From contig MQRK01216696.1 of NCBI GenBank assembly GCA_001938485.1, positions 1 through 61,958 on the forward strand: a stretch of DNA of 61,958 nt, given 5' to 3'. A program made the position numbers and the translations under genes. The notes beneath the pieces are model-generated. The model was not told the DNA's origin. It saw nothing but the letters and a program-made list of their open reading frames with translations, and searched no databases. This stretch comes from Girardia tigrina (lineage: Eukaryota). Shown here piece by piece: positions 2,435 to 47,756 of the stretch (positions within the stretch are counted from its first letter, which is position 1; every line of letters begins with the position of its first letter).

Positions 2435-3700
2435 CAGGGTGACCCATTATCCATGAGCTTTTTGAGATAGTCTTTTTTATTGAGGTGAAGGAGATAAAAT
2501 TAACAATATATACCTTTTAATAATTCTTATTAGTTGTAGTTTTTTATTCTTTTTTTTGAACTTTTTTTTGCAAATGAACTTCTCGGCTACATCGATAACA
2601 GCTTATTTACAAACAAGGATATGTGGTTTACAGACGAAGCACATTTCCATTTGGACGGTTATGTGAATAAACAAAATTGGCGAAACTGGGGCTCAGAGAA
2701 CCTTCATCTCTCTATTGCGAAGCCTCTGCATTCAGCCAGGGTTACTGTTTGGTGCGCAATAAGCGCAAGTGGAATTATTGGTCCCTACTATTTCGATAAA
2801 ACAGTTAATGCAATCGAATACAAAAAAGTTTTGGAAACATTTTTCATTCCAACTGCGATAGGGCAAGGCAAAGTTGACAAGTTTTGGTTTCAGCAGGAAG
2901 GTGCGAGATCACATAGGACACAGGACGTATTCGATTTTATATCGGAGCATTTTGTAACAAGGATTATTGCCCTGGATGCGAAAAAAATTAGGAGATGGTG
3001 GAATAGAATGGCCTCCCTATTCACTGGATCTCAACCCCTGTGACTTTTTTCTATGGGGTTTCTTAAAGGATAACGAGTTTAGAAATGCTCCAAGAACCCT
3101 TTCGGACCTGAAAAAAGCAATATCGAAGTGGCTCAAAGAAATTCCGATTTCTACTTTTGAGGCAGTTTGTGCAGGGTTTGAGAATTGACTACGAGACGTG
3201 GTTTTGTCTGAAGGAGGGCATTTCGAAAATCTCATATCTTAAACTGCAAAATTCGCTCTTTTTAATAAAGTTTAAATCAACTTTTTAGAAAATGTAGTTC
3301 TCTTATTGTAAAAATTACTTTTTTGTATTCGATTGTATTAACTGTTTTATCGAAATCATAGGGACAATAATTCAACTTGCGCTTATTGCACACCAAACAG
3401 TAACCGTGGCTGAATGCAGAGGATTCGCAATAGAGAGATGAAGGTTCTCTGAGCCCCAGTTTCGCCAATTTTGTTTATTCAAATAACCGTCCAAATGGAA
3501 ATGTGCTTCGTCTGTAAACCACATATCCTTGTTTGTAAATAAGCTGTTATCGATGTAGCCGAGAAGTTCATTTGCAAAAAAAAAAGAATAAAAAACTACA
3601 ACTAATAAGAATTATTAAAAGGTATATATTGTTAATTTTATCTCCTTCCCCTCAATAAAAAAGACTATCTCAAAAAGCTCATGGATAATGGGCCACCCTG
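2435..3700 (+). mobile_element. Tc1/mariner deletion derivative with about 390-bp inverted arms
   Basis: Ends CAGGGTGACCCATTATCCATGAGC / GCTCATGGATAATGGGCCACCCTG flanked by TA. Transposase motifs WFTDEAHF, FQQEGA and WPPYSLDLNPCDFFLWG, frameshifted. 2435-2829 is mirrored at 3317-3700. Confidence 0.9.
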
Positions 3701-4950: not shown

Positions 4951-6238
4951 TTAGGGTAAACCAAAAGTCTTTTCGTATTTTCTACGTCTTTTTGTTCAAT
5001 TGTTTTTTTATTACCAAATAAAGATATTTTATATACATGTGTTATATGTTTTTAAAGCTCTTGAACTGCTCTATCACAATATATATTAAAACTTCTAATT
5101 AGTCGTTAATATAATTTTTATGGTCTCTTAGAAAAATCATGGAAAATGTTGAAATTCGTGTTCTTTTACGCCATTACTGGAAACAGGGCTCAAACGCAAC
5201 TGCAGCAACAAAAAAGATATGCGAAGTTGAAGGCGATAATGTGGTCTCAAATCGTACTGCACAAAATTGGTTCAAAAGGTTCAACGAAGGCGACATCGAC
5301 CTCGGAGACAATGCACGTTCAGGCCGACCTATCACCGTAGATTCCGGAGCAATTCGTGAAGCCGTCGAGACAAATCCGTCAATAAGTACTCGGAGATTGT
5401 CGGCTGAACTCGATATTCCTCAAACATCCATTGTACGACACCTTCACGCTCTTGGCAAGGTCAATAGACGATGTCGAGAAGTGCCTCATCAATTGACACA
5501 AATTCAAGCCGAAAAGCGTTTCGAAACTTGTCAAAAATTGCTTGAAAATCCGTGCGATGTCCGTTTCATCCGTCGAATTGTAACTTGCGATGAAAAGTGA
5601 ATTTACTTCAGTAATCCAGACCAACAAAATCAATGGTTGGACCCCGGACAAATGGCGAAACCGGTAGCGAAACGAGATCGTTTCTCAAGGAAGGCACTTT
5701 TGTGTGTTTGGTGGAATTTCGAAGGNGTGATTCACTTCGAGCTGGTTCCAAATGGTCGTACCATCGACACTGACCTTTACTGCGCCCAACTTGATCGAAT
5801 GTATGCGGCACTTGGCGAGAAATACCCCGCTTTGATCAATCGAAAGCGAGTTCTTCTACAACAGGACAATGCAAAACCGCACACCGCAAAACAAACAAAG
5901 GAAAAAAATCAAAATCTCGATGCCTTTGAACTTCTTCCACACCCATCATATAATCCGGATCTTGCGCCATCCGACTATCACCTTTTCCACTCTATGTCAC
6001 ACTTTCTTCGTGGTCGCAGCTTCAATAATCTGGCTGAGATCGAAAATGGGTGTCACCAGTTCTTCGCTTCTACGAACAAGGATTGGTACCGCAGCAGGAT
6101 CGCACAACTTGCCCATAGATGGGTTCAAGCTATAGATTCAAATGGCCTTTACTTTGAAACTTAAATATTTTTTATTTGTTGTAAAATTATGTTTAAATTT
6201 TTAATAAAAAATACGAAAAGACTTTTGGTTCACCCTAA
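4951..6238 (+). mobile_element. Full-length mariner (DD34D, Mos1-like) with one premature stop
   Basis: TIRs TTAGGGTAAACCAAAAGTCTTTTCG / CGAAAAGACTTTTGGTTCACCCTAA with TA TSD. ORFs 5139-5600 and 5637-6164 are in the same frame: TCDEK*, QDNAKPH, HPSYNPDLAPSDY. Confidence 0.95.
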
Positions 6239-9379: not shown

Positions 9380-10700
9380 CCGCCGTTACATGAAACTATT
9401 TATTCTACAAAGACTTTTTTTATGTTTGGTGAAGTGTTATATACCATTAGAGAGCCCGTGCTATGCTCTACAAGATTAAAGTAATCGCTTTTGCCTATAT
9501 TACTTTTTGTCTTTTTTTAGAACCGTCAAATAGATTGTCAAGTCGACAAAAAATCACATTTTCGACACCTTCTTTTCACCTTTAATTGAGGTCACAAAGT
9601 GAGTGAAGCTACGAGAGAAATATGTGCCGTGTATGGAGAGGACGCTATAGCTGAGAGAACTGCTCGGGATTGGTTTGCCAGGTTCAAACACGATAATTTT
9701 GACCTCAACGACGCACCTCGTTCCGGAAGACTAGTCGAGATGGACAAGCACTAACTCGGGGATCTTTTAAAGGAAGATGGCCGCCAGACATGCAAAGAAT
9801 TGGCCGAAAAGATGAATTGTGATTTTGCGACAATTTCACGCCATCTTCAGTCGATGGGTTTCACTCAAAAGCTTGGAGCTTGGGTCCCGAACGAACTCAC
9901 CCAAAAACAGAAGGATAAGCGACTTTCCATTGCTGCTCAAAATCTCGCTCGACACCAAGGAACCCATGACCACAGACAACGTTTATTATACAAAATCGTC
10001 AATGGAGACGAGAAATGGTGTTTCTATGTGAATATGAAGCAAAGGAGAGAGTGGATGAGTCCTAGAGAGAGGCCTAAGCCCAGGATCAAGAAAGACCTGC
10101 ACCCGATGAAGACAATGATTTGCGTAATGTGGAATTGGGAAGGTCTAATCCACTGGGAAATGCCTGGAAAGAACATGAAAGTAGAAAAGAATCTCTATAA
10201 AGCCCGATTGCATCGAGTCAATGAGGCAATTCAACAAAAAAGACCGTATCGACAAGGCCAGGTGATCCTCCTCCATGACAATGCTCGACCACACACCGCA
10301 AAAAATGTCAAGATGGCACTCCAAGAGCTCAGTTGGTAGGTCCTTCAACATCCTCCCTGTTCTCCAGACCTCACCCCGACGGATTACCATCTCTTCCGCT
10401 GCCTTTCAAATGAAATGAGGGGCCTTAGCTTCGAAAATCAGGATCATCTTGAGAATTGGCTTAACAACTTCTTCGAGACTCGACCTAAGGATTTCTGGCG
10501 AAATAGAATCAACAAACTGGTGGAAAGATGGGAAGAAGTAGTGAACAATGAAGGAGAGTACATAATTGATTTTTACTGTTAAATTTTTATGATTTCATTA
10601 AATATATAATTAACTGAGTCATTATTTTGGTTGTTAAAATTCTTTGATTTCTTTGAAAATAAATGTTTAAAAAACGGCGGGAACTTATGCAACAACCAAA
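9380..10700 (+). mobile_element. Mariner (DD34D) copy with stops, inserted in a (TA)n tract
   Basis: WVPNEL, NGDEKW, HDNARPH and HPPCSPDLTPTDY. Right TIR AAAAACGGCGGGAACTTATGCAACAACCAAA. The left end lies in a gap. Confidence 0.9.
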
Positions 10701-11942: not shown

Positions 11943-12227
11943 TGTGAGGAATATTTGAATGTTTGAAGTTTTGTGTTTGAATGTGTATGTTGATTTGGAA
12001 ATGTGTCTCTCCTACCCAGATGGATGATTAATATTTTAATTCTTATTATCTAAAAATATGTAATGTTTAAATTTATTTTTAATTTAATTTAATTTTAAAA
12101 TATTAAATAAGTTAATTTATTTTTATAATATTTAATAAATAAATCAAATTAATATTTTTTAATAATCATTTTAATTATTATCCAATAAGTTTTGACTAAA
12201 TATTTTAATAAAATATTTATTTCCCCA
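11943..12227 (+). repeat. Dispersed repeat family, copy 1
   Basis: TGTGAGGAATATTT...GTATGTTGATTTGGAAATGTGTCTCTCCTACCCAGATGGA followed by an AT-rich tail. Shared with the copies at 25857 and 41458. Confidence 0.75.
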
Positions 12228-15583: not shown

Positions 15584-17118
15584 CAGTACGGATAAAATTA
15601 ACCGGGACAAGCCTAAAATTTCATTTTCCCCCCAACAAAAACATATTACAAATGAAATCCAAGCAAGCAGGTGTTTATTTTATAGGAAACTGGGACCCCA
15701 ACGACTGTTTAACAGTTTATGGATTCTTTCAGGCATATTTGAGCAGAATGACACGCACAGGTTATGAATGTCACTGTAATTGTACCAAAGGTGTTGAGCT
15801 TGCGCAATCAATTCTTCAACTGTGGAGTAGCTGCCAACCTTGTAAACTTTCCGTTTCAGCATGCCCCATACATTCTCATTGAGGCTAACATCCGGTGAGT
15901 TGGGCGCACAATCAAGGAGCTGGATGCCTTGCTGATGGAAGAAGGCCATGATTCGCTCTGCCTTGTGGCAAGGCACGTTATCCTGTTGAAACTCCCATGG
16001 GCTGTTGGGAAACCACGTGGCAACCTGCGGTAGGAAATATTGCTGCAGAAGGTTGACATACCTTTCAGCATTCAGAGTGCCTTGAACGGGGACGAGGCAG
16101 CCAGGCCTTTCGCAGATATGATTCCCCAAAACATCACCTTCCGGGCGAATGTGACGTTCCGGACAGTGTGGACCTCACGGATGCGGCAATCCTTTGAACG
16201 TCGAACGAATGGTTTTGCTTTGTGCCCCAATTCCACCGTCGTCTCGTCACTGAATATGACCTGTACAGTAAGGGTTGGGACCAGCAGTGACATGAGAATA
16301 AGGTAAGCAATGAAAATTAAATGAAATTTCGCTTACTTGACTCCAGTCATCCTCGTCTTACACCGCACGCACGTGAGCCCATTGGTGCCTATCTTTTTTG
16401 CGGTTGGTGTTAAGGAAGGGAATCCAAAGTGGTCGATAGGCATACAGGTCACATTTTCTTAGGAGTTGCTTCACTGTGTCGAGGCACACACTCGAGCCAA
16501 TGCTGCCAATGCTGATGCGCATTTCCTGAGCAGTCTTCGTTGGAAACTTCTTAGCTTCCCGAACGATAAGACTCTTAAAATGCCTGGTCAACTTCTCCTT
16601 CCTGCCGCAATGTCCCTTTCGTCCACTCTGCGCTTTCTGTAGAATTCCATCTCGTAATGATACGATTCACAGCACTCTTAGATAAATTCAAATCTGTAGC
16701 TATCTCGCGTTTCGTCTTACTGGTGTGCAAGTACAATGCAATCACTCGCTCTCGATCCCCTAATGTGGTATCACTCATTGTGCCTGGAGAACAGAATGAC
16801 AAATAATGGCTTTCTGAGAATTCTATTTATAGACTCCACATACCCAATAACAGACATAATGTACTGGCGTGTAGTGTGCATGTGTCATTACTTACAGTAT
16901 CCTTTGGCTTCTTTTTTAGGCTTTTTGTGTGTGCATGTGAGTTCATTTACTTGGCTTTGACTATTACTCGTGTGTGTGCATGTGCGTGTGAGAAAGAGCA
17001 ACACAGGTAGTAGAAACACATGTCATGTGCAGTGTGCTTTCCCTCTGTACAACAGGTGTGAACATGGTTTTGTGGAAAAAATGAAATTTTAGGCTTGTCC
17101 AGGTTAATTTTATCCGTA

Positions 17119-17640: not shown

Positions 17641-19028
17641 ATATAAAAATTTAAAAATATTTTTAATATAATTTATTTATTTATTCTTATATAAACATAT
17701 TTTTGTCTATAGTTATAACAGGTTTTTGACACATTCATAAAATAGTAGTAAAATCAGTTATTTGAGCAATAGTTAACGTTTTATAATACCAATAAAATCA
17801 ACAAAAAATTATTATATCTATCAAAATTAAATTAAGGTCTCTGCACCGTAAGAGGAATTATTTTATCAAGACATTTTAATATCTCTCTATACAGAAACGT
17901 TTTTTGCACGTATAGTCTTGTCAGTTGGTGTTTAATATAAATGTTTTATGCAGAATATTAACGACAATTTTCAAAGAAAATTTCCGAATAACTTCCCTCT
18001 ATATTTTTCATGCTTTCATTCTTATATTAACATGCGCGACCTAGATATCTCACTTTAGATGGTTGAGCAAAAAATGTTGAAGTAAGATTTACTATGTATG
18101 GTAGATGATCAACACTAGAAACCTAGAGGTTGCAACTGCATTTTGGTTTTCGGTGGTATCTTTGAAAAGAAGATATTTTTAGATACCTACTGTCGAANNG
18201 TNNNTNNCNNCNGNAATNNNNTNAATTTATCNATCNNAAATCATTTCGGTAAANTATCAANTNNNTGATCATNNNTAANANANTATATATCATNTGNCNG
18301 ATCGTTTNTTGTATANNNTGNTNCANANNNTNNATNNANNNTNTGNANCANNNTATACAANAAACGATCNGNCANATGATATATANTNTNTTANNNATGA
18401 TCANNNANTTGATANTTTACCGAAATGATTTNNGATNGATAAATTNANNNNATTNCNGNNGNNANNNACNNTTCGACAGTAGGTATCTAAAAATATCTTC
18501 TTTTCAAAGATACCACCGAAAACCAAAATGCAGTTGCAACCTCTAGGTTTCTAGTGTTGATCATCTACCATACATAGTAAATCTTACTTCAACATTTTTT
18601 GCTCAACCATCTAAAGTGAGATATCTAGGTCGCGCATGTTAATATAAGAATGAAAGCATGAAAAATATAGAGGGAAGTTATTCGGAAATTTTCTTTGAAA
18701 ATTGTCGTTAATATTCTGCATAAAACATTTATATTAAACACCAACTGACAAGACTATACGTGCAAAAAACGTTTCTGTATAGAGAGATATTAAAATGTCT
18801 TGATAAAATAATTCCTCTTACGGTGCAGAGACCTTAATTTAATTTTGATAGATATAATAATTTTTTGTTGATTTTATTGGTATTATAAAACGTTAACTAT
18901 TGCTCAAATAACTGATTTTACTACTATTTTATGAATGTGTCAAAAACCTGTTATAACTATAGACAAAAATATGTTTATATAAGAATAAATAAATAAATTA
19001 TATTAAAAATATTTTTAAACTTTTATAT
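17641..19028. repeat. 1.39-kb palindrome (foldback) with an ambiguous core
   Basis: Arms of about 555 bp are reverse complements (one mismatch seen near the outer end). The core 18198-18471 has mirror-symmetric Ns. Confidence 0.95.
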
Positions 19029-21458: not shown

Positions 21459-24397
21459 TGTGAAATAATTAACAGTAACTATGTCAGTGTTATAAATTAA
21501 GTTAGGGTTGTTTTAACGAAGTGTGTAAATCGACAGATTTGAATTATTTAGGATTACCGGCTCGAGAACTTGGTTTTATTAATCTCGATATCTCCCAAGA
21601 TATCGTGGCTCTAAGAAGACGTTAAAGATAGTGCCGGCCTTCGATAGGCGAAAAATGTATCCTTATGGCTTGAGCTCCTCAATGCTCTGCGAGGACAAGC
21701 AGACGATGTTGCTGCTGGCGCTATCTGGAGAAGCAACAGTTATGTTCTGGAAACTGATCGAAACGTCGATGAAGGATTTCGAGAAGAGTGCAACGGCGTT
21801 CATCGAGGCTTTCGCATCAATTCCTTGATTGTCGTGGACGAGGTTCGTCTCACTATGCCTAGAAATCGGCGAGAGCGTTCACTACTTTATGGTTGATTTG
21901 AAGCGATTAGTCATGGTTATTTGAGGAGGTGCCGGCGGCTGTGATGTCTTTGGGACCCATACTTTTATAAGCGGGCTGCCCGAAGCGGCCATAAGGAGCG
22001 TGGAAGCCGAGGTGCAAGATTTGGATTGGCTGGTTCAGTTGTACCACGTGCATGTTGAGGTTGCACACACATTCACCCAGGATGTTGTGGCCATGGCCCA
22101 GCCGGCCCGAAATTTAGCGTCGATCAGTAGGTTAAAATGCTTCTGTTGCAGAAAGAGTGGGCACGTCGCACGTGAGCGCGCGACCGAGAGACACTGCCAT
22201 CGGGCAATGACAGACCAAGCAGGATCAAGGGGTCAGCAATGCTTCAGTTGCAGCGGTGCGGGTCACATTGCGAAAGAATATCGTTGAGTGGATCAAAAAC
22301 CGGCGGATAACGGACAACTGTCTCACACTGCTGCGCAGATGGAGGGCCTGGACATAGTGACGCGCGACTAACAATCACCCCGGCAATCGTATGTGAGAAG
22401 GCGGGGATAGCGGTAGTTAACACGGTCCGTTCGACCACAGTGGTTAAAGAAGTGTTGGTTCCACCGTCCAAATTTATTCGTGTAAGGGAGTCGGTGCAGT
22501 TGATGGACGACTCGGAGGCGAGCATAAAATTCAGAGCGTCAATATCGATCGAGTGTGGTCGGAGACGAATCGAATGCAACGTATTGGTAGTGCCAAAAGT
22601 TATAGCGTCGAGGGTCGAGGTGCTTCTAGGAATGGACGTCATCAGGTAGTTCGGGAGCGTATGGGGATCAGAAGTGGCGATGGGGTCACGACGAGACAAC
22701 ATTTAATTGCATTGTTGGAAGATGAAGACTTCTCAGCTGAATTCGATGGCAAATTATGGACCGTGGCATGGAAGTAGAAATCTGGCAAGGAGCCACCAGA
22801 ACCGATAAAAAAGGTTGCCGAACCCGATGACCGGTAGATGGGACGTAGTGGATTGTAGACGGGGACGAGTGTGGTGCGATGCGAGCTCTATCGCAACGGG
22901 CATCTCTGTAGAAATCGGGGAGAGGTGGTCGAGAACGCGTCTTAGTAGCGCAAGGAAGACGATATAGCTTACATAGATCTGGCATAGTTTGAGGCAGCTA
23001 ATGAAGCTATGAAGGCGACAGTGGAATGAGTACTAAACAAATTCGAGAATATGACCGATCTGCCACAGTATTCCGATTATGATAAATACGTTGAAGGGCG
23101 ATAGATCGGTCCATTCCAGGGGATCAGTGAGCTGCTGATGAAACAACGGATAAGCATCATACGGAAAACTTTTGAGTGGGACGAATGAAGTTTCTGGCGA
23201 GGAAGCTCTGGGGTCCTGGTCGAGTGTCAGAGAATCAAATCAAAGTAGTAGTGAATGAATGTCCTCGGTTTGCGTCAAGCAATCCCGCAGCTGTGAAATG
23301 GGAGAAGGGCGAGCTGGGCGTAAAAGGAACATGACAAAGTCACGCGATGGATGTAACGAACACTACCGAGGGGAAGTTCATAATGTTGGTGAACTGTGGA
23401 CCAGAATGGTTCTCAGTGTGGAGAAGAATCGGATCTGAAAGTGAAGAGGGGCTGTGCACCGATCTCAAGGCGGTGTTTAACGAATTCGGGCCTCCAAAAG
23501 AGCTGTTAGTGGACAATTTCGCAACCAATCGGAGAGCAACGATTCGGAAACTGTTGGCAGGAACGGTCGTCAAGATCCTCTACTGTTGCGCAAACCAACC
23601 TAGCGGAAACGGGATCGCTGAGCACTGTCATCAGACGATCAAGCGCATGGCAGCGAGGAGCAGGAGGTCAACCGAGAACATGCTCGCGTGGTACCACGCC
23701 AATCCGAATTCAGTCGGCATAATTCCGGCATCGACTGTCTTCGCGGAGCAGAGGCGGCTGCCGTTGCTTAAAGATTTTGCGGGTCAAGGTCCGAAGATAA
23801 TACAGGTTAGAGACAATTCAGAGATAGGAGTAGGTGACGTGATGTATGTGAAGCTAGCGAACCCAAGATGTACAAACCAGTGGTGAAGAGCGGTGGTGGG
23901 TGAGGTCCGACCTCACAATCAGGTGGTGATCGACGGGATTCCATTCCACGTGTCGCACGTCAGACGCGCTTCCTAGAGCTGCGATTCGTCTGCCGATGAA
24001 GGATCCAAGGACCCGATTGCAAATCTTGGATGCCTAAGGATGAGGTCGATAGTGACAGTTCTGACGGTTCAGACCGGGGCATGACAGAAGATGTTTTGGA
24101 GAGCGATCAGAGTCAAATGAGCGAAGGGACAGCACGGTGTCCGCGATGTGTGATCGTTCAACCAGCGCATTTCAAGGACTTTTTTGCACAGCACTGTATA
24201 GATCAGAGAAAGACGTACCCCTGTGCACGAGTGGTGTGTTCATATGTGCTTTAAGGACAAGGGGGAGTGTTAAAGGAATTAACAGTTATATATCAGAGTT
24301 ATAACTTAAATTAGGTTTGTTTTAACGAAGTGTGTAAATCGACAGATTTGAAGATTACCGGCTCGTGAACATGATTTTATTTATCCGATGTCGCACA
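21459..24397 (+). mobile_element. Gypsy-like LTR retrotransposon A, RT largely deleted
   Basis: LTRs 21459-21597 and 24268-24397 (TG..CA), TSD ACTAA and PPT AAGGGGGAG. Gag Zn knuckles, protease LLGMD and an integrase core at 23347-23886. Confidence 0.92.
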
Positions 24398-25006
24398 ACT
24401 AATCCATTAATCAAGCTTCAATATGGGCAAAATAAGACTGTTTAAATTTATAAAATCTTTAAATAAATCTTTTATTATTAATTTTCAATGATATCTTCAA
24501 TGTTAAACATTCAAAATTTTCAACAATCATCACAACAAAATCTAATGGTGAGGTTTAAAATGATAATCATTCTGAAGATATAAACGAGCTATTGAAAACG
24601 TATTGAACTGGCATTAATAAAAACAACTTTATTGGTATGGAAAATCTGAGGAGACTGAAGTAATGTTGATTAATCTCCTTATAATTATAAATATAATAAT
24701 AATAAATATAATGTCGAACAATAAGAAAAACCTAATCGTCCAATCCAGAATTAAAAATTTAAATATCTAATGTATATAAAAGCATTGAATGTATATTAAA
24801 ATTTGTCTAGCTGTCCAAATTATTTGAATTATATTCAGATCGAGGAAACCCAAATAACAACCTTACAAAATATGAAAATGAATATAAAAAAATCAAAAAT
24901 TCTAACAAAAAATTTCTGATTTTTTAAAGCTTATAAAATATATTTGAAAAATCTTCAGAAATTTTCAAGCATTCAATATTTTTTTAGAAATTATATAATC
25001 TTTTTA

Positions 25007-26820
25007 AGTGGTGCACCCAATAAGTACTTGAGCAAATAATAATTTGACGATTCGTCGATTTTAAAAGATACATCAGTAAGATGCGGTTTAACAGTCTGTT
25101 TCTCTAGTTCGCTGACATGCTTTGGGAAGCTTGAACCACTACACTGAAAAGAATTACATCATAAAATTGATATTACACGTTATTATACTTAAATATATGT
25201 AAGGAAAAGTGGTATTGTTTTTCTAAGCTGCTTGCGTATTTAAAGAAATCGCACTATTTCATTATTTCGTTAGAGTAAATCAGATAACACTGAATTTCGA
25301 AGTGTTATAATCTTTTTGTTTTTGAAAAAACTAACATAAGAAATTATTTCACAACTGCAGGACGTTGAAATGAGTGATAGCCGTGTATCCTTTTTACAAC
25401 TGGATTTGTGATTTTAAAAGTAGGTGCACTACTTTTTTTGATTTGGAAAAGACTGAAAAACCATTGGAAGTGGAAAATTAGAAGAAAGAAATGGTACATG
25501 AATTAATAAATACATACAGTTGTATGGTAACAATAGACTTGTCACAACGTCTAAATGTGTGTTGTATAATTTACTAAGTTAAATGTGCGTCATAAAGTTG
25601 TGTTCATGATTTGTGTTCCTTACTGGTATCATGTAGCAATGACAATATGAGTGTTATCAGTTAATTGTAAATCTTTAAAAACTTGATGAGTTCTTTCTGA
25701 AAAACATAATCACAGAGGATGAAACACCTCAGCCGATAGATATCTGAAACTAAGCGCGAATCTGCCGAATAGAAGATACCTTGGGAGAAGTAATGACTTA
25801 AAATCAGATTTGATACATCAAACAAGAAATGCTTGGTGCTCCAAATCTTTTGAGACTGTGAGGAATATTTTGTGTGTGGATGTTTCTGTGTAGTGTTTGC
25901 ATGTTTAAATGTTGTATGTTGATTTGGGATTGTGCCTCTCCTAACCAGATGGATTATCAATATTTAATTTCTTGTAATGTGAAACTAATTTATTTAAATT
26001 TAGATTTAATATTCAAATTTTTAATTTTTATTATTGTAACTTTTAAATATGTTTATTTATTTTATTTTTGTAAATTCTTAAATAATTAAAATCAAATTAA
26101 TGTTTAAAAATGACTATAAAAATATTTTATTTCAGTCAATAAAATTTAAAGTAAATATTTTTAAATAAAAATAATCTTCTCAAGTATAGTTCAGATTATA
26201 ATGGGAGATATTGAAAATTGATTGATGGACCTAAGTGAAAGCAATTGTATTGATCATCATAAAGATGATAAGAATGTGAATGTAATAAATGTTCTGTCAA
26301 ATGTGTGAGTTCTCTTAACAGGGACATTAAAGACTCCAGAAGTGGATTTCGTTGCATCAGATGTCAAAATCAACTCCGATTATTATATACAACTGATGAA
26401 GGAAGCAAGCTTTAAACATCAGAGAAAATGAAAGAATGAAATCTGCCTATCGCATGCCAATGTCTCAATCGAAACATTCTGCCTGATAACAGCAACGATT
26501 GACTGATGTGGATTATCATTGATGTTTCACCCACCATATTCCATTAATTTTCACCTCTTCCGACAACTGAAAAAAAATTTGATGAAAATTCTTTGATTAT
26601 GTAAGTGATTTTCCGCAGCATGTCACGATTTGCTGACTTTGTACTCCAAAACCTTCTATAACAAGGGCATTTTGGACGTGGTTTCACGATGACGAAAATG
26701 CATATAAGTTAGCGGAGTTTGCAATAAGAAAAAAATCTAGACTAATTGCTTTTTTATTGTTATAAAGTGGAATAAAATCGGTTGTTAATTTTAGCAGTCT
26801 AAGTATTTATTGAGAGCACT
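25007..26820 (+). mobile_element. Highly degenerate mariner containing later insertions
   Basis: TIR-like GTGCACCCAATAAGTACTT / AAGTATTTATTGAGAGCAC and an FHPPYS..FHLFRQLK remnant at about 26525-26570. The 25060-25145 segment recurs at 27160-27245. Confidence 0.55.
25857..26182 (+). repeat. Dispersed repeat family, copy 2
   Basis: TGTGAGGAATATTT...GTATGTTGATTTGGGATTGTGCCTCTCCTAACCAGATGGA followed by an AT-rich tail. Confidence 0.75.
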
Positions 26821-27674
26821 ATGCAAATACTAATTGATATATTTTAAAATGTATCTATTCGTTTCATAAAGAATTTAACTTTTTTAAAGACTATTTAACA
26901 ATTTTTAAAGACCATTTAACTTTTATGAAATTATAAAACATTTTTTGAAATAATGTAATAAATTTTATTTTAAAAATAAATTTCATGCGCCATATATAAC
27001 GATTATTCAAATAAATATTTGTTATTAAAATTATTTTAGTATATTTCCACATTCCCATCAGGTTCGTCTGTAGTCAAATATACATCAATGACATAGTCTT
27101 ATAAATAACTCAGTTTAATCTGAATGTGATTCTCTAGGGTTTTGTTGTTCGTCAGTTTCAGAAGATACGTCAGTAAGATACGGTTTTATAGTATTTTTCT
27201 CTGGTTCACTGATATGTCTAGGAAACCATAAAGCACTACACTCAATTAAATATTTGCAATATGAAAACTTTTTTTATCCTTGTACCTTTTTAACATCGGT
27301 CTTATCCAGACCAATTCATAGTTGCAATATTCTTTTTTTACATTTTAAATTTTAAATGTGCATTTTGTGTAAATTTACACATTATGCTAATTATAGGGAA
27401 AAGTTCTCAATATATGAAAATTCTAATTACCCATTTAGATAGAAAATCAAAATGTGCATCAAACACATGATATCAATTTTTGACACTAGTACAAATTTTA
27501 TGTATTGATTTTTGCACTTTTGCACATGTGCAACTTAAAAAAGCACTTTGCTAGCACATTAGAAATGTTCGGCACAATGTACAATATCGATTAGCACTTT
27601 AAAACTATCGATTAGTACATTTGTGCACTTTGTAGCAATCGATTAGCACTTTTTTCTACAGTTGCAAAGGAAAA

Positions 27675-29694: not shown

Positions 29695-32600
29695 TGTTGG
29701 ATATTAGATATTTTAATTATTTGAAATATTTAATATTTACTTTTTTGATAAATATTTTGTTTAAATATTATCAATTAAACAGTGTTTTGAAAAAAAACTT
29801 TTCGCGTGTTACAAGCTATCCGGGCATAATGAATGATATGAAAATCGTTTTGGAGTTTTTAGAGAAATTCGATGGAAGCATCAGTTTCGAGATTTGGCAG
29901 AAGAAATTTGAAATGATCATGAAAATCCAGAAGATTACTGATCCAGCCCCGCATCTCCCTTTTTTACTCTCGGGTGTTGCACTGAACATCTACATGGAAT
30001 CGGACGAGAAGACGCAAAGTAACTGCGATCGGTTCTTCAAGATATTAAACAATTCGTTCGGCCTGACTAGACGTTCTGCGTACAGTCAATACTTACAGTA
30101 TCACGATGGCGAGACTATCGATGAATATGCATCTCAGGTGAAGATGCTAGCAACGAAGGTCGACGATCTAACAAAGGGTGCCTTCATGGCTGGACTGCCT
30201 TTCGAGTTGCAGGTGGATTTGGAACGGGCCGGCGACCAACCCCTGACCGAAATGATCGAGTATAGCCGCAGGTATTTGGGGATTAAAAAGGGTTTATTAC
30301 AGGGTTCAATGGCAGCAATACAACACGGAAACAACATCAAAGAAACATGGAGTTCCGGAGGTCAGGGCGAACTCGATAAACCCAGAGCAAATCTTCAGAA
30401 AGGACCCTATGTTCATCGTGAGAGAGACACTAAATTGAAGGAAAGTAATCATCATAAGGGTTCTCAGTGGCAATTAAACAGATAAACAATATGCTACAAA
30501 TGTCAGAAACCGGGTCATATCGCAAAATATTGTCGGTCGGGAAACGAACAGGGGAGTTTGTAGGCGCCGGCTCTCTTCCTTCACAGTTGACGGCGTGGCC
30601 GACGATGATCGTCACAGTAAATGACAGGTCAGCCATAGCGTTGATTGATTCACGTTGTTCGAAAACGGTTGTTTTAAAAGGGTTAGTTAGTGATTGTATG
30701 TTGTTTTCTGACGGAGAAAGTATGGTTTTGGCGAATGGAATAGGTGTTAGAGTGGGTTCGAGTGAAGTGCGGCTGAATATAAATGGCAGGATCATTAGGG
30801 TTGAATATTCATGGAACATTTGCCGTACGGTTTAGGGATCTTAATAGGTGTGGATATCATAAGTAAATTGGGCGGCGTGAAAATTAATAAGGGTGTTATT
30901 GAGTTCGGTGAAGAGGAAATTAAAGGGATAGATAGTAGCTTGAGTTGTACTGCATCGGATGCGCCTCTTGTTAGTATAAAAAAGCATAATTTTGAAATTG
31001 AGTTTAGGGAAAATTGGTCGATTAAATGGAATTGGAAAAGTGAGGCTCCGAGTTATCTTCCTAATCGTCAGTCAGTTTTTAAGCACAACAAATTAAAAGA
31101 TGTTGCAACGTTGAAAATTTTAGACGGTTGGGTAGAAAAGGGTTATCTAATCGAGTACAATGAGGAAGAAATGGGTAAATCGATAGGATCCATACCGATA
31201 TTTTGAATATTACAGGCTAATAAGTCCAAGATAAGACCCATTTTTGATTTTAGAAAATTAAACAATTATGTGAACGTTTATAGTGGTTCTGCGGACATAT
31301 GTTTAGAAAAGCTCCGCGATTGGCGACGTAGGGGTTTGACTTTTTCAATGCTTGATTTGTCAGAGGCGTACATACAGATTCATGTTCATAAGGACATGTG
31401 GCGTTACCAATCTTGTATCATTAATAACAAGAAATATGCTTTAACTAGGATGGGTGTTGTTTTAAACATTGCACCAACTATAATGACCGAAATCGTCAGG
31501 TGGATTCTGAATTTTGACACCAGGATACTTGAAAATACTGACTCTTATATTGATGATATTTATGTAAATGAAAGTTTCACTTCTGTTGAAGAAGTAGAAA
31601 AAGTGGTCAATAACTTCGGTCTCAAATGTAAGAAACCGGAAAATCTGTCACAAGCCAACGAAGTTCGAGTTTTAGGAATGAAAGTCTTTAAAGACCAACA
31701 TGTAGTGAGATGGAAGAGGGACAATCAGGTAAGGGATGAGCTGGACGTGGAATCAATTTCACGTCGCGAGTTATATTCGTTATGTGGACAATTAGTAGAA
31801 ATACACCCGGTAGCTAATTGGCTACGTCCGTCATGTTCATATCTTAAACGACTTAGTGAGGGAAGGTGAGATGAAAAGATAGACGAGGAATTATTCGAGA
31901 AGATTAAATGGGTTTTAAAGACAGTGAGGGAGAGTGATCCTTGCAGAGGTTTATGGGCTATTGATGACTGCAGGGAAGGTATTATATGGTGCGACGCAAG
32001 TTCAATAGTCATTGGTGCGGCGTTAGAAGTCAAAGGGAACATAATTGAGGACGCATCATGGTTGAGAAAAACTGATGATTCTAGACATATTAATGTAGCA
32101 GAACTAGAAGCAGTTGTAAAGGGTTTAAACTTATGTGTGAAATGGGGTTTAAGGAGCGTGATAGTAAAATCGGATAATAAGTCATTAGTTTCGTGGGTCA
32201 AGATGTCAAGAATGTCAATCCATCGATCCGGCACCCGTAAAATGGAAAACAAAGTACAATCAACAACAATCTCAGATCGTGAAAAATTAAATACCAAGGC
32301 TTCATCTGAGCTTTTAATAAAACGAAGACTGTCGATGATCAAGGAGCTGTGTCAGGAGTATGAGATCGAGTTGAAGATAGAGTTTGTTTATAGCGAAGCT
32401 AACAAGGCAGATGAGTTGACAAGAATCCCAAAACAATTAAAAAGAAGCAATTGTTTTTTATCTGTTACGGACGATCTACTCAAGCTGCAGCAACTTCATG
32501 ATAAGTGTCATTTAGGCGCAAACTGAATGCGATATTTATGTGCGAAGCAAGGAATAGGTGTGTCAAACGCGGATATCAAGGATCTGATTTCAAGATGTCA

Positions 32601-33565
32601 AGAATGTCAATCCATCGATCCGGCACCCGTCAAATTGAAAACAAAGTACAGTCAACAAAAATTTTTAAGCGTAATCGATTGTGGTCCTTCTCGCTTTGCG
32701 ATATAGAAATTAATTAAGGCTGAAGACATCAAGTCAATTGTCTCAGAATTCTAAAGTTTGTTCTGTGAACGCGGGTCTCCCAAGGAACTAATTATCGATA
32801 ATTATACCACATTTCATTCGGTAGAATTCAACAAACTAATGAAAAAATGGAACGTTCGTGTCATGTATCGTGCCATCAATCGACCCAACTGCAACGGAAT
32901 AATAGAAAGGAATCATAGAACAATCAAAAGAATTGCGTCCAGATCAAATATCAGCATTTTGGAAGCCTTATGGTGGTATAATAACACNNNNNNNNNNNNN
33001 NNNNNNNNNNNNNNNNNNNNNNNNNNNNNNTATTTGCCCATAGGGTTAGATATAATTGGAAGAAGTGAAAAGGAGCCGTTCTGTGGAAATCCAGATTATG
33101 TTGAGAATCAATTAGTGTGGGTAAAACCGGAAAACAGTACACCATGTACACAGCAATGTACCAAGGGTGTTGTCGTGAAAAGAATAAATCAAAAGAAATA
33201 TCTAGTAAATTGCAACGGATTTTGTGGTCCAATACATATCGCAGACATTTGACCTAGACAGCCTGACTTGGTTGAAAATTCCAAGTCATACTATATGAAT
33301 ATGGAGGAAACTGCATCACTACCAGACAATCAAATACAAGAGGAACAATCATTGAACTGTAGGCCTAGTAGAGAAAGACGAAGACCNNNNNNNNNNNNNN
33401 NNNNNNNNNNNNNNNNNNNNNNNNNNNNNNNNNNNNNNNNNNGGAGTGTTGGATATTAGATATTTTAATTATTTGAAATATTTAATATTTACTTTTTTGA
33501 TAAATATTTTGTTTAAATATTATCAATTAAACAGTGTTTTGAAAATAAACTTTTCGCGTGTTACA
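29695..33565 (+). mobile_element. Gypsy-like LTR retrotransposon B (gag-PR-RT-RH-IN), near complete with a few stops and frameshifts
   Basis: 119-bp LTRs (29695-29813, 33447-33565) with one difference and TSD GTTAA. ALIDS protease, LDLSEAY/YIDD RT, WCDASS/HINVAEL RNase H and integrase IDN..ERNHRTIK. It sits inside an older mariner remnant. Confidence 0.95.
29814..29825 (+). promoter_or_regulatory. Non-canonical primer-binding site complementary to tRNA-Lys(UUU) nt 1-12
   Basis: AGCTATCCGGGC immediately after the LTR's CA is the reverse complement of GCCCGGATAGCT. Confidence 0.8.
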
Positions 33566-34445
33566 GTTAATTTTCGAATTCAAATCTTAAACAATTTTTT
33601 ATCTGTTTACCAATCTTACATATACCACCACATTCTCATCATCAAACGCTAATTGGGTACCCTTCTTTGACTGACTGATTTAATCATTGATCGTTGTGTT
33701 ATAGACAGCTATTGTCATAAATCTGACGCAGAATTTTTTCCCTTTTCATAATTTAAAACTAAAAACTTTACAAAGCTTCGATAATCTACGGGATGCGATA
33801 TCACATAAGGAAAATTCGAAATTAAACAAGTATTTAAGGAAAAATTGCAAGCGTAAAGATGATTTTTCTATTATATTGTTTCCTGTTATAGTTTGAGTAT
33901 CCAAGTTTAAATGCTTTTATGGATCGGTTTTCTTTTTATTGTAACTTACGTATTATTTTGTTTTAAAAAACTTAAAGATTTATTTTTAAATTTTCTAGAA
34001 TATGGAAAATGTAATCTTGCTAACCATACCGTTTAATTAAAATTTACATAGAAATAATATTTATTACTTGCATCTTTTAAAAGGTAAAATCAGTTAGAAT
34101 TTTTTACCGAGAAAATTATAATTTATAATAATGAGGTTTGAATCTATAAATTAATCTAAAAAAAGTTTCCTATTTTCCAATTCGTAATTTATTGAATTTT
34201 AATGGACACTTATTTGCCTTTATTTATAAATCTATGTTATATTTGTATAAGAATAAATATTATGAATTTAATTATATGATCAATCATTTTATTCACATAA
34301 TTTATGCAATGTTTATATTAAGTTATTTTTTAAATAAATGTTTTAGCAAGACGCTGTCAAATTAATAATGATTTATTTCTATTATCATGTATAATATTAA
34401 AATTTTGTACTATGAAAATAAATATTATAATTTCTCATAATGCAG

Positions 34446-41457: not shown

Positions 41458-41655
41458 TGTGTGGAATATTTTTGAATGGTGCTTTTTGTATGTTTGGTAT
41501 GTTGTTTTAGGATTGTGTTTCTCCCACCCAGATGGAAGATTGATATTTTAAATATTTTAAAACGGATTATTTAATCAATTATTAAAGTTTAAACAACCAA
41601 TTTTAAAATTAAATTAATATTTAATAAGTAATATTTTAATAATAATTTTCTTAAA
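41458..41655 (+). repeat. Dispersed repeat family, copy 3
   Basis: TGTGTGGAATATTT...GTATGTTGTTTTAGGATTGTGTTTCTCCCACCCAGATGGA followed by an AT-rich tail. The right end is uncertain. Confidence 0.7.
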
Positions 41656-41942: not shown

Positions 41943-42499
41943 TAATTTTTGGTCACTACACCGTATCATCCCAGTTTTTCGAAAGACATTTTGCCGAAAA
42001 GACATTGTAAAACATAACAAATGAAAATTTTACTAAACTGAATTACATTCAATCAATTATCTACATTTTGCCTAAATTTAATTTTTCTTAAGTGAATTTT
42101 TTTACAAGAGATGGCAATGAAGATGTTGGAATATCTTTTCATAATTATTGTCGTCGAACGCGATTTGCTATTGATTTAACTCAGATTTTGCTAACCTCCA
42201 ATTGTTAAATTAAGTTTCAAAATCTCAATTTACTCTGACATTATATGCTATCCGGGTATGTCAACCGTAAAATTAGTTTTTGAGTATTTACAAAGATTTA
42301 TGGAAATAATTCATATATTTGTATTAAACCCTGATATTACGTAACACAATAGTCAACAAGTCCCCGGTCTGACACATTTAATACCCCAAAGTTGAAGTTA
42401 TCTAACAATAACTAATCTGCATAGCAGCATCTTTGAAACGATAGATGTCAAAAAACCATTATTTTATCATAATTTTTAAAAAAAATTATGTAAGTTTTA

Positions 42500-44212: not shown

Positions 44213-45627
44213 NNNNNNNNNNNNNNNNNNNNNNNNNNNNNNNNNNNNNNNNNNNNNNNNNNNNNNNNNNNNNNNNNNNNNNNNNNNNNNNNNNNNNNNN
44301 NNNNNNNNNNNNNNNNNNNNNNNNNNNNNNNNNNNNNNNNNNNNNNNNNNNNNNNNNNNNNNNNNNNNNNNNNNNNNNNNNNNNNNNNNNNNNNNNNNNN
44401 NNNNNNNNNNNNNNNNNNNNNNNNNNNNNNNNNNNNNNNNNNNNNNNNNNNNNNNNNNNNNNNNNNNNNNNNNNNNNNNNNNNNNNNNNNNNNNNNNNNN
44501 NNNNNNNNNNNNNNNNNNNNNNNNNNNNNNNNNNNNNNNNNNNNNNNNNNNNNNNNNNNNNNNNNNNNNNNNNNNNNNNNNNNNNNNNNNNNNNNNNNNN
44601 NNNNNNNNNNNNNNNNNNNNNNNNNNNNNNNNNNNNNNNNNNNNNNNNNNNNNNNNNNNNNNNNNNNNNNNNNNNNNNNNNNNNNNNNNNNNNNNNNNNN
44701 NNNNNNNNNNNNNNNNNNNNNNNNNNNNNNNNNNNNNNNNNNNNNNNNNNNNNNNNNNNNNNNNNNNNNNNNNNNNNNNNNNNNNNNNNNNNNNNNNNNN
44801 NNNNNNNNNNNNNNNNNNNNNNNNNNNNNNNNATTGAAAACTGAGGGTACACTAAAATTGTCTTTTCTGACCCAGAAAAGTTATTTTGTCCTTTTGAGTG
44901 CATTATGAAAAGTGCTTAGTATTTTTTTTAAAATTCTGTTATTAATTACTCTAAAACTCAAATTAATCCCCACGAGGAATTATTATTTTAGGTAAGTATT
45001 TTTAAAAAATATAGGAGGTTAGAAATTATTCGAGATTTTATCAAAAATTAAACGAAATAAAAAATAAGAGAAACATAAAAAAATTTATTCATCCACTATT
45101 TCAGAAAAATAAGACTCACTCAGGTGGTTGATTAAATCCAGTTTTAGAGTAAGTACAGCATTTTTTTATGTTTACTTTACCAATAGTCACTATTATTTAG
45201 TCTTTTATTCTGATCTCTTTTTATCTAATATCATTCGTTCTGGAGTCTCCTATATGGTAGAATTGTAGGTTAGAGAAAAGCCAAAAATATTGCAGAAACA
45301 TTGAATGTTAAAGATTTCGAAACAAGGAATTGCTGTTTCTATAATACACCATTTTACATGAAAATTAATTTTTATGAGATTAATTTTATCGGAATAACCG
45401 TCATGATCAGATCATAAAACTGTTTATATGTTCCAGTAGTAATGAAATCGTAATGACAACACTTTCATTACGGTTTGTTGAGTGACATTAAATTTAGTAT
45501 ATCTAAAGTTATTTTCTTTCTTGATGACTCAATGACGTCGGTTATACGGTAAAAACTTTCCAAAATTATTCTTTTATAATTATTTAAATATTTATTAATT
45601 TAAAAATTATTAATAGTTAATATATAG

Positions 45628-46883: not shown

Positions 46884-47756
46884 CAGGGTGCGGCAGCTAT
46901 TTGAGAACACGTAATATAGACACCATATCTTTTTGTGTGTTATAATTACATAATTTTATTTTTGCTGGTAGACATGGCAGAAGCTACTCTTACNNNNNNN
47001 NNNNNNNNNNNNNNNNNNNNNNNNNNNNNNNNNNNNNNNNNNNNNNNNNNNNNNNNNNNNNNNNNNNNNNNNNNNNNNNNNNNNNNNNNNNNNNNNNNNN
47101 NNNNNNNNNNNNNNNNNNNNNNNNNNNNNNNNNNNNNNNNNNNNNNNNNNNNNNNNNNNNNNNNNNNNNNNNNNNNNNNNNNNNNNNNNNNNNNNNNNNN
47201 NNNNNNNNNNNNNNNNNNNNNNNNNNNNNNNNNNNNNNNNNNNNNNNNNNNNNNNNNNNNNNNNNNNNNNNNNNNNNNNNNNNNNNNNNNNNNNNNNNNN
47301 NNNNNNNNNNNNNNNNNNNNNNNNNNNNNNNNNNNNNNNNNNNNNNNNNNNNNNNNNNNNNNNNNNNNNNNNNNNNNNNNNNNNNNNNNNNNNNNNNNNN
47401 NNNNNNNNNNNNNNNNNNNNNNNNNNNNNNNNNNNNNNNNNNNNNNNNNNNNNNNNNNNNNNNNNNNNNNNNNNNNNNNNNNNNNNNNNNNNNNNNNNNN
47501 NNNNNNNNNNNNNNNNNNNNNNNNNNNNNNNNNNNNNNNNNNNNNNNNNNNNNNNNNNNNNNNNNNNNNNNNNNNNNNNNNNNNNNNNNNNNNNNNNNNN
47601 NNNNNNNNNNNNNNNNNNNNNNNNNNNNNNNNNNNNNNNNNNNNNGTACGTGTTAATATATGTAAAATTTTAAATTGTAATAAATGTTATTTTTCTGTTG
47701 TATATTCATTTTTTGAACTTTATGTCATTTTGTTCTCAAATAGCTGCCGCACCCTG
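46884..47756. mobile_element. Tc1/mariner-type element, mostly in a gap
   Basis: Perfect 25-bp TIR CAGGGTGCGGCAGCTATTTGAGAAC with TA flanks. Confidence 0.85.

Follow-up and report, generated by a model that had tools for sequence, protein, structure and literature searches.

A putative primer-binding site complementary to nucleotides 1–12 of host tRNAs in a lineage of LTR retrotransposons

Among the steps that define retroelement replication is the choice of primer, for which textbooks give few modes: the 3′ end of a tRNA, a tRNA-Met half, and self-priming. Canonical priming from the tRNA 3′ end is found in retroviruses, Ty1, Ty3, gypsy and BEL/Pao. The LTR retrotransposon analysed here and its clade resemble these systems in that the inferred primer is a host tRNA, the putative site lies right after U5, related elements appear to differ in the tRNA used, and copying of the primer may renew the site. 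They differ in that the opposite end of the tRNA would be paired, no TGG is present at 47 junctions of LTR and site, and an endonucleolytic cut would be needed.

Copia, 1731 and Ty5 are reportedly primed by an internally cut fragment of initiator tRNA-Met, at a site without TGG (Kikuchi 1986; Ke 1999). The clade shares with them the lack of TGG and, as inferred, a primer that is a piece of a host tRNA released by an internal cut. However, the site of copia, 1731 and Ty5 pairs with the anticodon-arm region of the initiator tRNA-Met and the primer is a 5′ half of ~39 nt, whereas in the clade nucleotides 1–12 are paired, the cut would lie within the D stem, matches extend to several elongator tRNAs, and the genes are not ordered as in copia. 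The clade does not fit the half-tRNA type, as the site is the complement of nucleotides 1–12 of Lys or Phe tRNA starting from position 1 (no initiator tRNA was compared).

There is also a likeness to Tf1, Tf2, Tj1 and the Tf1/sushi group. In both cases, a short site without TGG lies beside the LTR (11 nt there, 12 nt here) and pairs with the 5′ end of an RNA, and the 3′-OH of the primer must be created by cleavage where the duplex ends. In Tf1, this cut is made by the RNase H of the element (title of Levin 1996 as cited in PMC4600332). The pairing RNA in the Tf1 group is the 5′ end of the element's own mRNA, which is encoded in the LTR; in contrast, no complement is found in the LTR here, and the matching sequences are those of tRNA starts. 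Unlike the Tf1 group, members of the clade gave no chromodomain match (Pfam). Other non-canonical sites are the polypyrimidine site of Dictyostelium Skipper and the orphan site of DGLT-A (PMC5006619), and the conserved hairpin of fungal GalEa (PMC5445492). As in the present case, whole lineages depart from the TGG rule there, as judged from sequence only, but the partner RNA of those sites is unknown, whereas here it is identifiable.

The element in the window and the 12 nucleotides after its 5′ LTR

The window, that is, the whole stretch of 61,958 nucleotides that was analysed, contains an LTR retrotransposon of 3871 bp (~3.9 kb) at 29695–33565 (+) (Table 1). It meets the generic features of LTR retrotransposons: paired direct LTRs with TG..CA ends, a short target-site duplication, and gag together with protease, reverse transcriptase, RNase H and integrase. 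The LTRs are identical at 118 of 119 positions, starting with TGTTGG and ending with GTTACA. Because the second LTR and the GTTAA duplication set the bounds, the LTR end at 29813 was fixed without use of the 12-mer that follows it. The copy in the window is defective in both gag and pol: gag has one in-frame stop, and pol has six in-frame stops, one frameshift and two masked runs of N, with one masked run in the integrase region. In intact relatives, gag encodes 246 aa with a CCHC zinc knuckle, and the pol ORF terminates 13 nt inside the 3′ LTR. Masking at the polypurine position leaves just GGAG before the 3′ LTR of the window copy; purine runs are found there in relatives from other species.

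Table 1. Coordinates of the element and its parts in the window
Feature	Position	Strand	Basis or remark
Target-site duplication, left copy, GTTAA	29690..29694	.	Same 5 nt at 33566–33570
5′ LTR, 119 bp, TGT...ACA	29695..29813	+	Direct repeat of 33447–33565
Putative primer-binding site, 12 nt	29814..29825	+	Complement of nt 1–12 of a tRNA starting like animal tRNA-Lys(UUU)
gag	29829..30563	+	Translation; comparison with L002; Pfam Retrotrans_gag and zf-CCHC on L002 product
pol	30605..33459	+	Pfam on window pieces and intact relatives; bounds mapped from L002/L001
Protease domain (approximate bounds)	30611..30864	+	Pfam gag-asp_proteas / Asp_protease_2 on L002 pol, mapped
Reverse transcriptase fingers/palm (approximate bounds)	31234..31680	+	Pfam RVT_1, mapped
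Reverse transcriptase thumb, Pfam DUF7047 (PF23088) (approximate bounds)	31759..31929	+	Pfam and structural model, mapped
RNase H, RVT_3/RNase_H type (approximate bounds)	31981..32388	+	Pfam and model secondary structure, mapped
Integrase: zinc-binding, core and C-terminal parts (approximate bounds)	32485..33386	+	Pfam Integrase_H2C2 and rve; PDB profile matches to retroviral integrases
Expected position of polypurine tract	33387..33446	+	33387–33442 masked (N)
3′ LTR, 119 bp	33447..33565	+	Direct repeat of 5′ LTR
Target-site duplication, right copy, GTTAA	33566..33570	.	Matches left copy

The 12 nucleotides directly after the 5′ LTR (29814–29825) are AGCTATCCGGGC, followed by ATA and then by the gag ATG at 29829. 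AGCTATCCGGGC is an exact 12/12 complement of nucleotides 1–12 of animal tRNA-Lys(UUU), the letters of which were taken from zebrafish and human papers. Pairing is limited by the LTR edge on one side and by tRNA nucleotide 1 on the other. The tRNA continues with CAG, which does not pair with ACA at the LTR end; therefore, the complementarity covers exactly nucleotides 1–12. By our arithmetic, an exact 12-mer match is expected by chance ~0.007 times in 62 kb on both strands. TGG is absent directly after the 5′ LTR. A search of both strands of the whole window at ≤2 mismatches did not find the reverse complement of the 12-mer and, besides the site itself, returned just a same-strand remnant at 42246. 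A sequence-only reading of the window had claimed that the LTR pair and the target-site duplication fix the LTR end at 29813, that no TGG follows, that the complement of the 12-mer is missing from the LTR, that the start of tRNA-Lys(UUU) is its 12/12 reverse complement, and that tRNA nucleotide 12 sits against the LTR edge. All of these held, the last one as a matter of geometry.

The same 12-mer is present without change in the other members of the family (L001–L009) and in L010, whose gag is 64% identical, and with one mismatch in the metagenomic contig L094 (pol identity 53%). A second member of the clade lies in the window at ~21.5–24.4 kb, and no readable primer site was found in it. tRNA genes were detected neither in the window (ARAGORN, Rfam) nor in the 83 scanned loci L011–L093 (ARAGORN). 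That the host of the window has a matching tRNA is inferred from conservation across animals, without a host tRNA sequence. It is likewise an inference that the partner in this host is specifically tRNA-Lys(UUU), as several tRNAs can have the same twelve 5′ bases. No special RNA fold was found around U5 and the site in comparison with shuffled sequence (z = 0.25).

Conservation and variation of the site across the clade

We compared the site in 80 metagenome loci, picked by pol similarity alone and not by the motif, and in named genomes, giving 85 sources. The junction of LTR end, 12-mer and gag ATG was found in 47 of the 85 sources, and a scan of the opposite strand gave one match. None of the 47 junctions had a TGG primer-binding site. 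Both the position and the 12-nt length of the site are conserved, with zero spacing to the LTR in all families, and the gag ATG lies 0–30 nt downstream; in several families it comes immediately next. Information content is high across the 12 nucleotides and the last 3–4 bases of the LTR and drops to background level at +13. Members of this large lineage come from arthropods and from numerous environmental samples.

Throughout the clade, eight of the 12 positions hardly vary. The 12-mers fall into about nine classes, which differ only at positions pairing with tRNA nucleotides 4–7 (in one class also at nucleotide 12). Three of these classes correspond to nucleotides 1–12 of known tRNAs, namely Lys(UUU), Lys(CUU) and Phe(GAA). 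The Lys(CUU) match rests on tRNA letters from human and the crustacean Triops, and the Phe(GAA) match on letters from human and Drosophila. The starts of tRNA-Lys(CUU) and tRNA-Phe(GAA) were confirmed for arthropods by probe sequences. The remaining six classes have no identified host tRNA and read, in tRNA sense, GCCTAGATAGCT, GCCGCGATAGCT, GCCGTGATAGCT, GCCGGGATAGCT, GCCGAGGTAGCT and GCCTCGGTAGCG. Two of them, with CA added, are the starts of Phe and Thr tRNA genes in viral contigs; the same tRNA start can belong to both Phe and Thr. It is inferred from sequence, and not read from the genomes of the element hosts, that the partner in relatives starts like tRNA-Lys(CUU), tRNA-Phe(GAA) or further tRNAs that lack identification. 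The pol sequences form about two dozen diverged clusters, and the class of the site differs between closely related clusters, as an exchange of primers would predict. Across families, the spacing between poly(A) signal and LTR end followed no consistent pattern.

Copies in assembled genomes were taken from the barnacle Amphibalanus amphitrite (GCA_019059575.1), the crab Petrolisthes manimaculis (GCA_034508575.1) and the leafhopper Macrosteles quadrilineatus (GCA_028750875.1). The barnacle copy (L091) has LTRs of 398 nt that are 100% identical, a GTATT duplication and a site of the Phe type. In the crab copy (L093), the LTR bounds were fixed independently, with a TAAAC duplication. In L094, the terminal LTR bases ...TTATTACA are found at both contig ends, and the 5′ LTR is cut by the contig start. 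These three copies confirm the geometry of the site from independently fixed LTR ends. In the leafhopper copy (L092), the motif follows ...ACA, and the 3′ LTR is truncated, so that this copy gives no independent bounds.

Proposed priming from tRNA nucleotides 1–12 and rival explanations

The position, length and complementarity of the site and its clade-wide co-variation with tRNA 5′ ends are shown by the data above. From position alone, we infer that the 12 nucleotides after the 5′ LTR are probably the minus-strand primer-binding site and pair with nucleotides 1–12 of a host tRNA. These nucleotides comprise the 5′ strand of the acceptor stem, nucleotides 8–9 and three bases at the start of the D stem, and not the 3′ CCA end. 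In the proposed mechanism, a tRNA or a 5′ piece of a tRNA would anneal to the 12 nucleotides, and a cut between tRNA nucleotides 12 and 13, where the end of the duplex is flush with the LTR edge, would create a 3′-OH. Reverse transcriptase would extend this 3′-OH into U5-R. The plus strand would then copy the 12-nt RNA to its 5′ end, by which a site of exactly 12 nt would be restored. The cut after nucleotide 12 is inferred; it might be made by a host nuclease or, as in Tf1, by the RNase H that the element encodes, neither of which is settled. No experiment or read data give direct evidence for the primer. The usual tRF-5a class of tRNA fragments is 14–16 nt long, which is longer than a 12-nt 5′ fragment, and to our knowledge no enzyme cuts inside the D stem of a tRNA.

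The sequence-only reading had gone further and inferred that minus-strand synthesis would be primed by a 12-nt 5′ piece of tRNA, perhaps cut by the element's RNase H as in Tf1; it knew of no description of this mode. The priming claim is supported, with actual priming and the cut after nucleotide 12 still inferred, and the role of RNase H also remains an inference. It had proposed comparing the nucleotides after the 5′ LTR with tRNA ends throughout the clade, and the comparison was favourable: position and 12-nt length are conserved and three variants equal three known tRNA 5′ ends. Neither of two outcomes that it had named as refuting, a TGG site in relatives and a motif that is not positionally conserved, was seen. 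In the searchable literature, with most subscription journals outside its coverage, we found no earlier account of a retrotransposon site that is the complement of the 5′ end of a tRNA, and the printed 12-mers occur there only as tRNA probes and primers. The feature is real, and it appears to be a new variant of tRNA-dependent priming as far as the searchable literature allows.

Several other explanations can be considered. It is unlikely, in our judgement, that the 12-mer binds 5′ tRNA fragments or whole tRNAs for other ends (silencing by 5′ tRFs, tRNA packaging, control of gag translation) while priming is achieved otherwise. In its favour, primer-binding sites of LTR elements are known targets of tRNA fragments (review: PMC7472051), a plant 5′ tRF associates with Gypsy sites, and the gag start codon comes directly after the site. 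Against it, there is no second candidate primer site between LTR and gag, and in several families the ATG follows the 12-mer at once; zero spacing to the LTR in all families and the fixed length of 12 fit primer copying; and a perfect silencing target would not be expected to persist over so many diverged pol clusters. We also regard as improbable that the primer comes not from a mature tRNA but from a different RNA that starts with these 12 bases; candidates would be the transcript of a tRNA-derived SINE, a small RNA resembling tRNA, or a product of pre-tRNA. Twelve bases cannot separate a tRNA from a tRNA-derived repeat, and one 12-mer can start different tRNAs, as with Phe and Thr. However, in every class the pairing ends precisely at position 1 of the mature tRNA, which fits a 5′ end processed by RNase P, and tRNAs are an abundant and conserved source across very different hosts.

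A cis-acting signal of the element itself (for integrase end recognition, dimerisation or packaging), with a coincidental likeness to tRNA, is very unlikely. The near invariance of eight positions is what a protein-binding site would show, but the variable positions give exact 12/12 matches to three different known tRNAs, and two further classes start real tRNA genes. Moreover, the four main variable positions could be filled in 256 ways, of which about nine occur; all three checkable known animal tRNAs of the frame are among them, for which we estimate a chance of ~1e-4 or less. Self-priming as in Tf1, in which the first bases of the element transcript fold back onto the site, can be all but ruled out. 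The geometry is like that of Tf1, Tf2 and Tj1, where 11 nt of the RNA 5′ end are paired beside the LTR and then cut free (PMC4600332); however, the search of the window for the complement, noted above, was negative, and the best match in the 450 nt upstream of 44 junctions was no better than in shuffled sequence.

Priming by tRNA nucleotides 1–12 remains our preferred reading. It can be put more boldly: in a widespread lineage of animal LTR retrotransposons, nucleotides 1–12 of elongator tRNAs, those for Lys and Phe among them, would start reverse transcription, and the cut that frees this primer would fall in the D stem, where an RNA-RNA duplex ends; the RNase H of the element might make this cut. 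We lean only slightly towards this version. If true, such lineage-wide use of the tRNA 5′ end would add one priming mode, which joins the host-tRNA dependence of retroviruses to the 5′-end-and-cut geometry of Tf1. It would also give 5′ tRNA sequences a direct replicative partner, and would bear on the reason for which hosts produce 5′ tRNA fragments and on the ways in which these might interfere with retroelements. Annotation tools that seek only complements of tRNA 3′ ends would call these elements devoid of a primer-binding site. The question of priming can be tested with sequence data alone, namely host tRNA sets and reads across primer-cDNA junctions.

Pol architecture and placement of the lineage

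The domain order of Pol is PR-RT-thumb(DUF7047)-RNase H-IN, with the integrase after RNase H, that is, the order PR-RT-RH-IN of Ty3/gypsy (Metaviridae). Ty3 was not among the top fold matches of Pol, and the likeness in domain order is not backed by an RT phylogeny with reference elements. Membership in Ty1/copia (Pseudoviridae) was rejected because the integrase lies downstream of RNase H and RVT_2 gave no match. Membership in BEL/Pao (Belpaoviridae) was also rejected, as none of the Pao-type Pol families of Pfam (Peptidase_A17, DUF1758/1759, DUF5641) matched any of 14 members at E ≤ 1.

In both sequence and fold comparisons, Pol is closest to retroviral PR-RT and integrases; fold searches also returned caulimovirus and foamy-virus Pol, and all of these matches are generic. 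The RNase H, of RNase_H/RVT_3 type, is a further likeness to retroviral and foamy-virus Pol. In contrast to these, the clade elements have no env, and the structural model predicts that RNase H directly follows the thumb, without a tether/connection domain. Odin retrotransposons are sea-anemone elements with dual RNase H, for which primer sites were not discussed (PMC9040795). The clade model has no tether domain, whereas RNase H is dual in Odin; a suspected identity was dropped, and kinship was never tested. DUF7047 (PF23088), predicted by the model to be a helical bundle between palm and RNase H, was found in 14 of 14 clade members. All 14 also matched RVT_3, and none matched RT_RNaseH or RT_RNaseH_2 of Pfam at E ≤ 1. 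The lineage is marked by this distinct Pol, with a DUF7047 thumb and a single RNase H of RVT_3 type, and is missed by current superfamily models.

The retrotransposon and the site after its 5′ LTR

The limits of the window retrotransposon were set because its direct LTRs carry the target duplication on both sides, and the 5′ LTR end was placed without recourse to the motif that follows it. This motif is a 12-mer, and the gag ATG lies three bases beyond it. We looked up its reverse complement in the published literature and found that the 12-mer is the complement of nt 1–12 of tRNA-Lys(UUU). The next letters of the tRNA, CAG, are not complementary to the LTR end ACA, so the pairing begins with tRNA nt 12 against the LTR edge and finishes at nt 1. 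No TGG follows the window 5′ LTR, and the complement of the 12-mer is absent from the whole window when up to two mismatches are allowed. Neither tRNA genes nor Rfam families were found in searches across the window. The sequence-only reading had claimed an LTR end at 29813 from the second LTR and the target duplication, no TGG, no complement of the 12-mer in the LTR, and a 12/12 match that sets tRNA nt 12 against the LTR edge. All four held, although use as a primer stays an inference. It had also raised the possibility of a cut by the element's RNase H as in Tf1; the cut and the 12-nt primer are inferred only, and the cutting enzyme was not identified.

Features of the window, with positions in window coordinates
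Feature	Position	Strand	Description
Whole element	29695-33565	+	3871 bp
5′ LTR	29695-29813	+	119-nt direct repeat, 118/119 identical to 3′ LTR; starts TGT, ends ACA
3′ LTR	33447-33565	+	119-nt direct repeat, 118/119 identical to 5′ LTR
Target duplication			GTTAA on both flanks of LTR pair
12-mer site	29814-29825	+	AGCTATCCGGGC
gag ATG	29829
Poly(A) signal, 5′ LTR	29790-29795		AAAAAA
Poly(A) signal, 3′ LTR	33544-33549		AATAAA, intact
Expected polypurine tract	33387-33442		N-masked
pol end in intact relatives	33447-33459		L001 2583-2595
Older clade member	21460-24400	+	gag-like, RNase H and integrase similarity; PR/RT part missing
Its flanking direct repeats	21480-21543, 24289-24352		92% identical
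Third clade member	60085-60540	+	decayed fragment; GACTATCGCGGC immediately before ATG and gag-like ORF (P0113 residues 6-148, E 1e-11)
12-mer-like motif	42246-42257	+	TGCTATCCGGGT, 10/12 identical to window 12-mer; then ATG and short gag-like start
Integrase C-terminal fragment	27124-27335	-	short; same clade, opposite strand
Mariner/Tc1-type transposase fragments	2621-3040, 5139-6161, 9800-10336	+	HTH_48, Transposase_1, DDE_3
Mariner/Tc1-type transposase fragment	15680-16126	-	as above
107-nt interspersed repeat	11984-12090, 25913-26019, 41496-41602		unknown kind; 61-100% identical to reference copy
N-containing stretches	18198-18471, 44213-44832, 46994-47645		one with scattered single Ns, two long N runs

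The window copy is defective in both gag, which has one in-frame stop, and pol, which has six in-frame stops, one frameshift and two masked stretches; its reading-frame pieces match RVT_1, DUF7047 and RVT_3 in Pfam. Because its two LTRs are nearly identical, we infer that the copy was probably defective already at insertion. Of the polypurine tract region, GGAG alone remains before the 3′ LTR. The sole difference between the LTRs sits in the AATAAA signal, which ends 16 nt before the LTR end; therefore, U5 would be just a few bases. The window copy shares 96.9% identity with L002, a public relative of the same family. The 114 substitutions between them, including 29 G>A and 23 C>T, show ordinary transition bias and not hypermutation; a short internal duplication within pol was counted among the indels.

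The 12-mer in relatives and its match to tRNA starts

A Pol search returned more than 400 relatives of 900–1000 aa, mostly on 3.3–4.5 kb contigs, and three of them come from named arthropods. With an alignment (A1) of 14 of these relatives, we retrieved 80 metagenome loci; this sample is unselected for the motif because it was fetched by pol similarity alone. To count as a junction, a sequence needed an LTR-like end, a 12-mer matching a loose definition and, no more than 60 nt away, the ATG of a long ORF. The coding strand yielded junctions in 47 of the 85 sources; the opposite strands yielded one. Among sources without a junction, most inspected contigs were cut off before gag. None of the 47 junctions carried a TGG site.

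Classes of the 12-mer, written in the tRNA sense
Class	Sources
GCCGCGATAGCT	12
GCCGAAATAGCT	9
GCCTAGATAGCT	8
GCCGTGATAGCT	6
GCCCGGATAGCT	window, L001-L010 (relatives)
GCCGGGATAGCT	2-4
GCCGAGGTAGCT	2
GCCTCGGTAGCG	2
GCCCGGCTAGCT	1

A few copies are one or two bases off a listed class. Column by column, site positions 1–5 and 10–12 are near-invariant and positions 6–9 variable, and information content drops to background both from +13 onward and before the final four bases of the LTR. This conservation is in part built in by the lists used; GGC at positions 10–12 was not demanded by the scan. An odd junction, AGCTATCATCGGCC before ATG, was observed in L064 (1927-1940) and might be a 13–14-nt site or an indel. 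In L058 (~2741-2752) and L070 (~1410-1421), the class ends in TAGCG, not TAGCT (tRNA sense).

LTR bounds were obtained independently in two arthropods. Amphibalanus amphitrite has 398-nt LTRs (100% identical, duplication GTATT) with AGCTATTTCGGC after ...CTACA, and Petrolisthes manimaculis has 274-nt LTRs (100% identical, duplication TAAAC) with AGCTATCTAGGC. Macrosteles quadrilineatus has AGCTATTTCGGC after ...TTACA; its 3′ LTR is truncated and the bounds are not independent. A metagenomic contig, L094, has the same terminal bases at both ends, its start cutting the 5′ LTR, and one mismatch to the window 12-mer.

Comparison of the 12-mer with tRNA nt 1–12 across the clade, a check put forward in the sequence-only reading, was favourable: three classes are the first 12 nt of three tRNAs, Lys(UUU), Lys(CUU) and Phe(GAA). 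GCCGAAATAGCT is the tRNA-Phe(GAA) start in a human primer and a Drosophila 5′ probe, and GCCCGGCTAGCT is the tRNA-Lys(CUU) start in human primers and a probe for the crustacean Triops. The literature searched, which deals mainly with vertebrates, gave no match to the remaining classes. Two otherwise unmatched classes, once CA is added, form the starts of tRNA-Phe and tRNA-Thr genes carried by viral contigs. Such tRNA starts therefore do exist somewhere, which is uninformative on hosts. The site class differs between closely related pol clusters, as in L013/L054 versus L017/L041 and in L050 versus L015-L032. These changes suggest that the partner tRNA has been switched repeatedly, as expected for primer switching.

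Putative priming and alternative explanations

Position, length and complementarity of the site are shown, and priming and the cut are inferred. In the proposed mechanism, tRNA nt 1–12 would anneal to the site, cleavage between nt 12 and nt 13 by an undetermined enzyme would leave a 3′-OH, and RT would then copy U5-R. The plus strand would later copy the 12-nt RNA to its end, which would account for a site with an invariable length of 12 nt and an end at tRNA nt 1. The closest precedent for the geometry is Tf1/Tj1, whose site pairs with the initial 11 nt of an RNA; this stretch is then released, and work cited in PMC4600332 attributes the cleavage to the element's RNase H. The closest precedent for a cut-tRNA primer is copia/Ty5. 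These elements use a cut tRNA as primer.

Self-priming by the element's own RNA is all but ruled out, since the 450 nt upstream of 44 junctions contain no better match to the 12-mer complement than their shuffled versions do. A cis-signal that merely resembles tRNA starts is unlikely given three exact matches to them. The site may instead bind tRNA 5′ sequences for a purpose other than priming, which remains conceivable; against it, there is no alternative candidate primer site, and ATG immediately follows the 12-mer in several families. A non-tRNA RNA carrying the same 12 bases is also possible and cannot be excluded from sequence alone. As for priming by a tRNA 5′ end, no retrotransposon primer site complementary to one was described in the literature searched, most subscription journals being outside its scope. 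Within those limits, the 12-nt site would be a new variation on tRNA-dependent priming of LTR elements.

Intact relatives, placement and other repeats

Public assemblies contain members of the window element's family whose reading frames are open (L001-L009). In intact copies, Gag is 246 aa long and has a CCHC knuckle, and Pol, at ~950 aa, runs from protease through RT, DUF7047 and RNase H (RVT_3/RNase_H type) to integrase. When the structure of a close relative was modelled (mean pLDDT 74), DUF7047 was predicted to be a helical RT thumb, with RNase H predicted directly after it, without a tether domain. The pol frame of intact relatives crosses the polypurine-tract position and stops 13 nt into the 3′ LTR, an extreme compaction. 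L001-L004, of 3808 bp each, are contigs from different ENA assemblies and circular permutations of one 3753-bp unit (~20x coverage); the unit follows from a 55-nt terminal overlap confirmed in L002. They might be one-LTR circles, or a multi-copy element that collapsed during assembly.

The clade shares its gene order with Ty3/gypsy, BEL/Pao and retroviruses. In Pfam, DUF7047 was matched in 14/14 members, and none of the 14 matched the models that characterise Ty3/gypsy RNase H, BEL/Pao or copia. The top sequence and fold matches of its Pol are retroviral/foamy-virus PR-RT and retroviral integrases. We left the lineage unplaced among superfamilies, as no RT tree with reference elements stands behind any placement.

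The window is a repeat-rich part of an AT-rich animal genome. The older clade member has a GC content of ~51%, versus ~30% in its surroundings, and its primer site is unreadable. The motif before the third-member ORF is two mismatches from class AGCTATCGCGGC, and the 12-mer-like motif upstream of a short gag-like start is likely a remnant of a related element.
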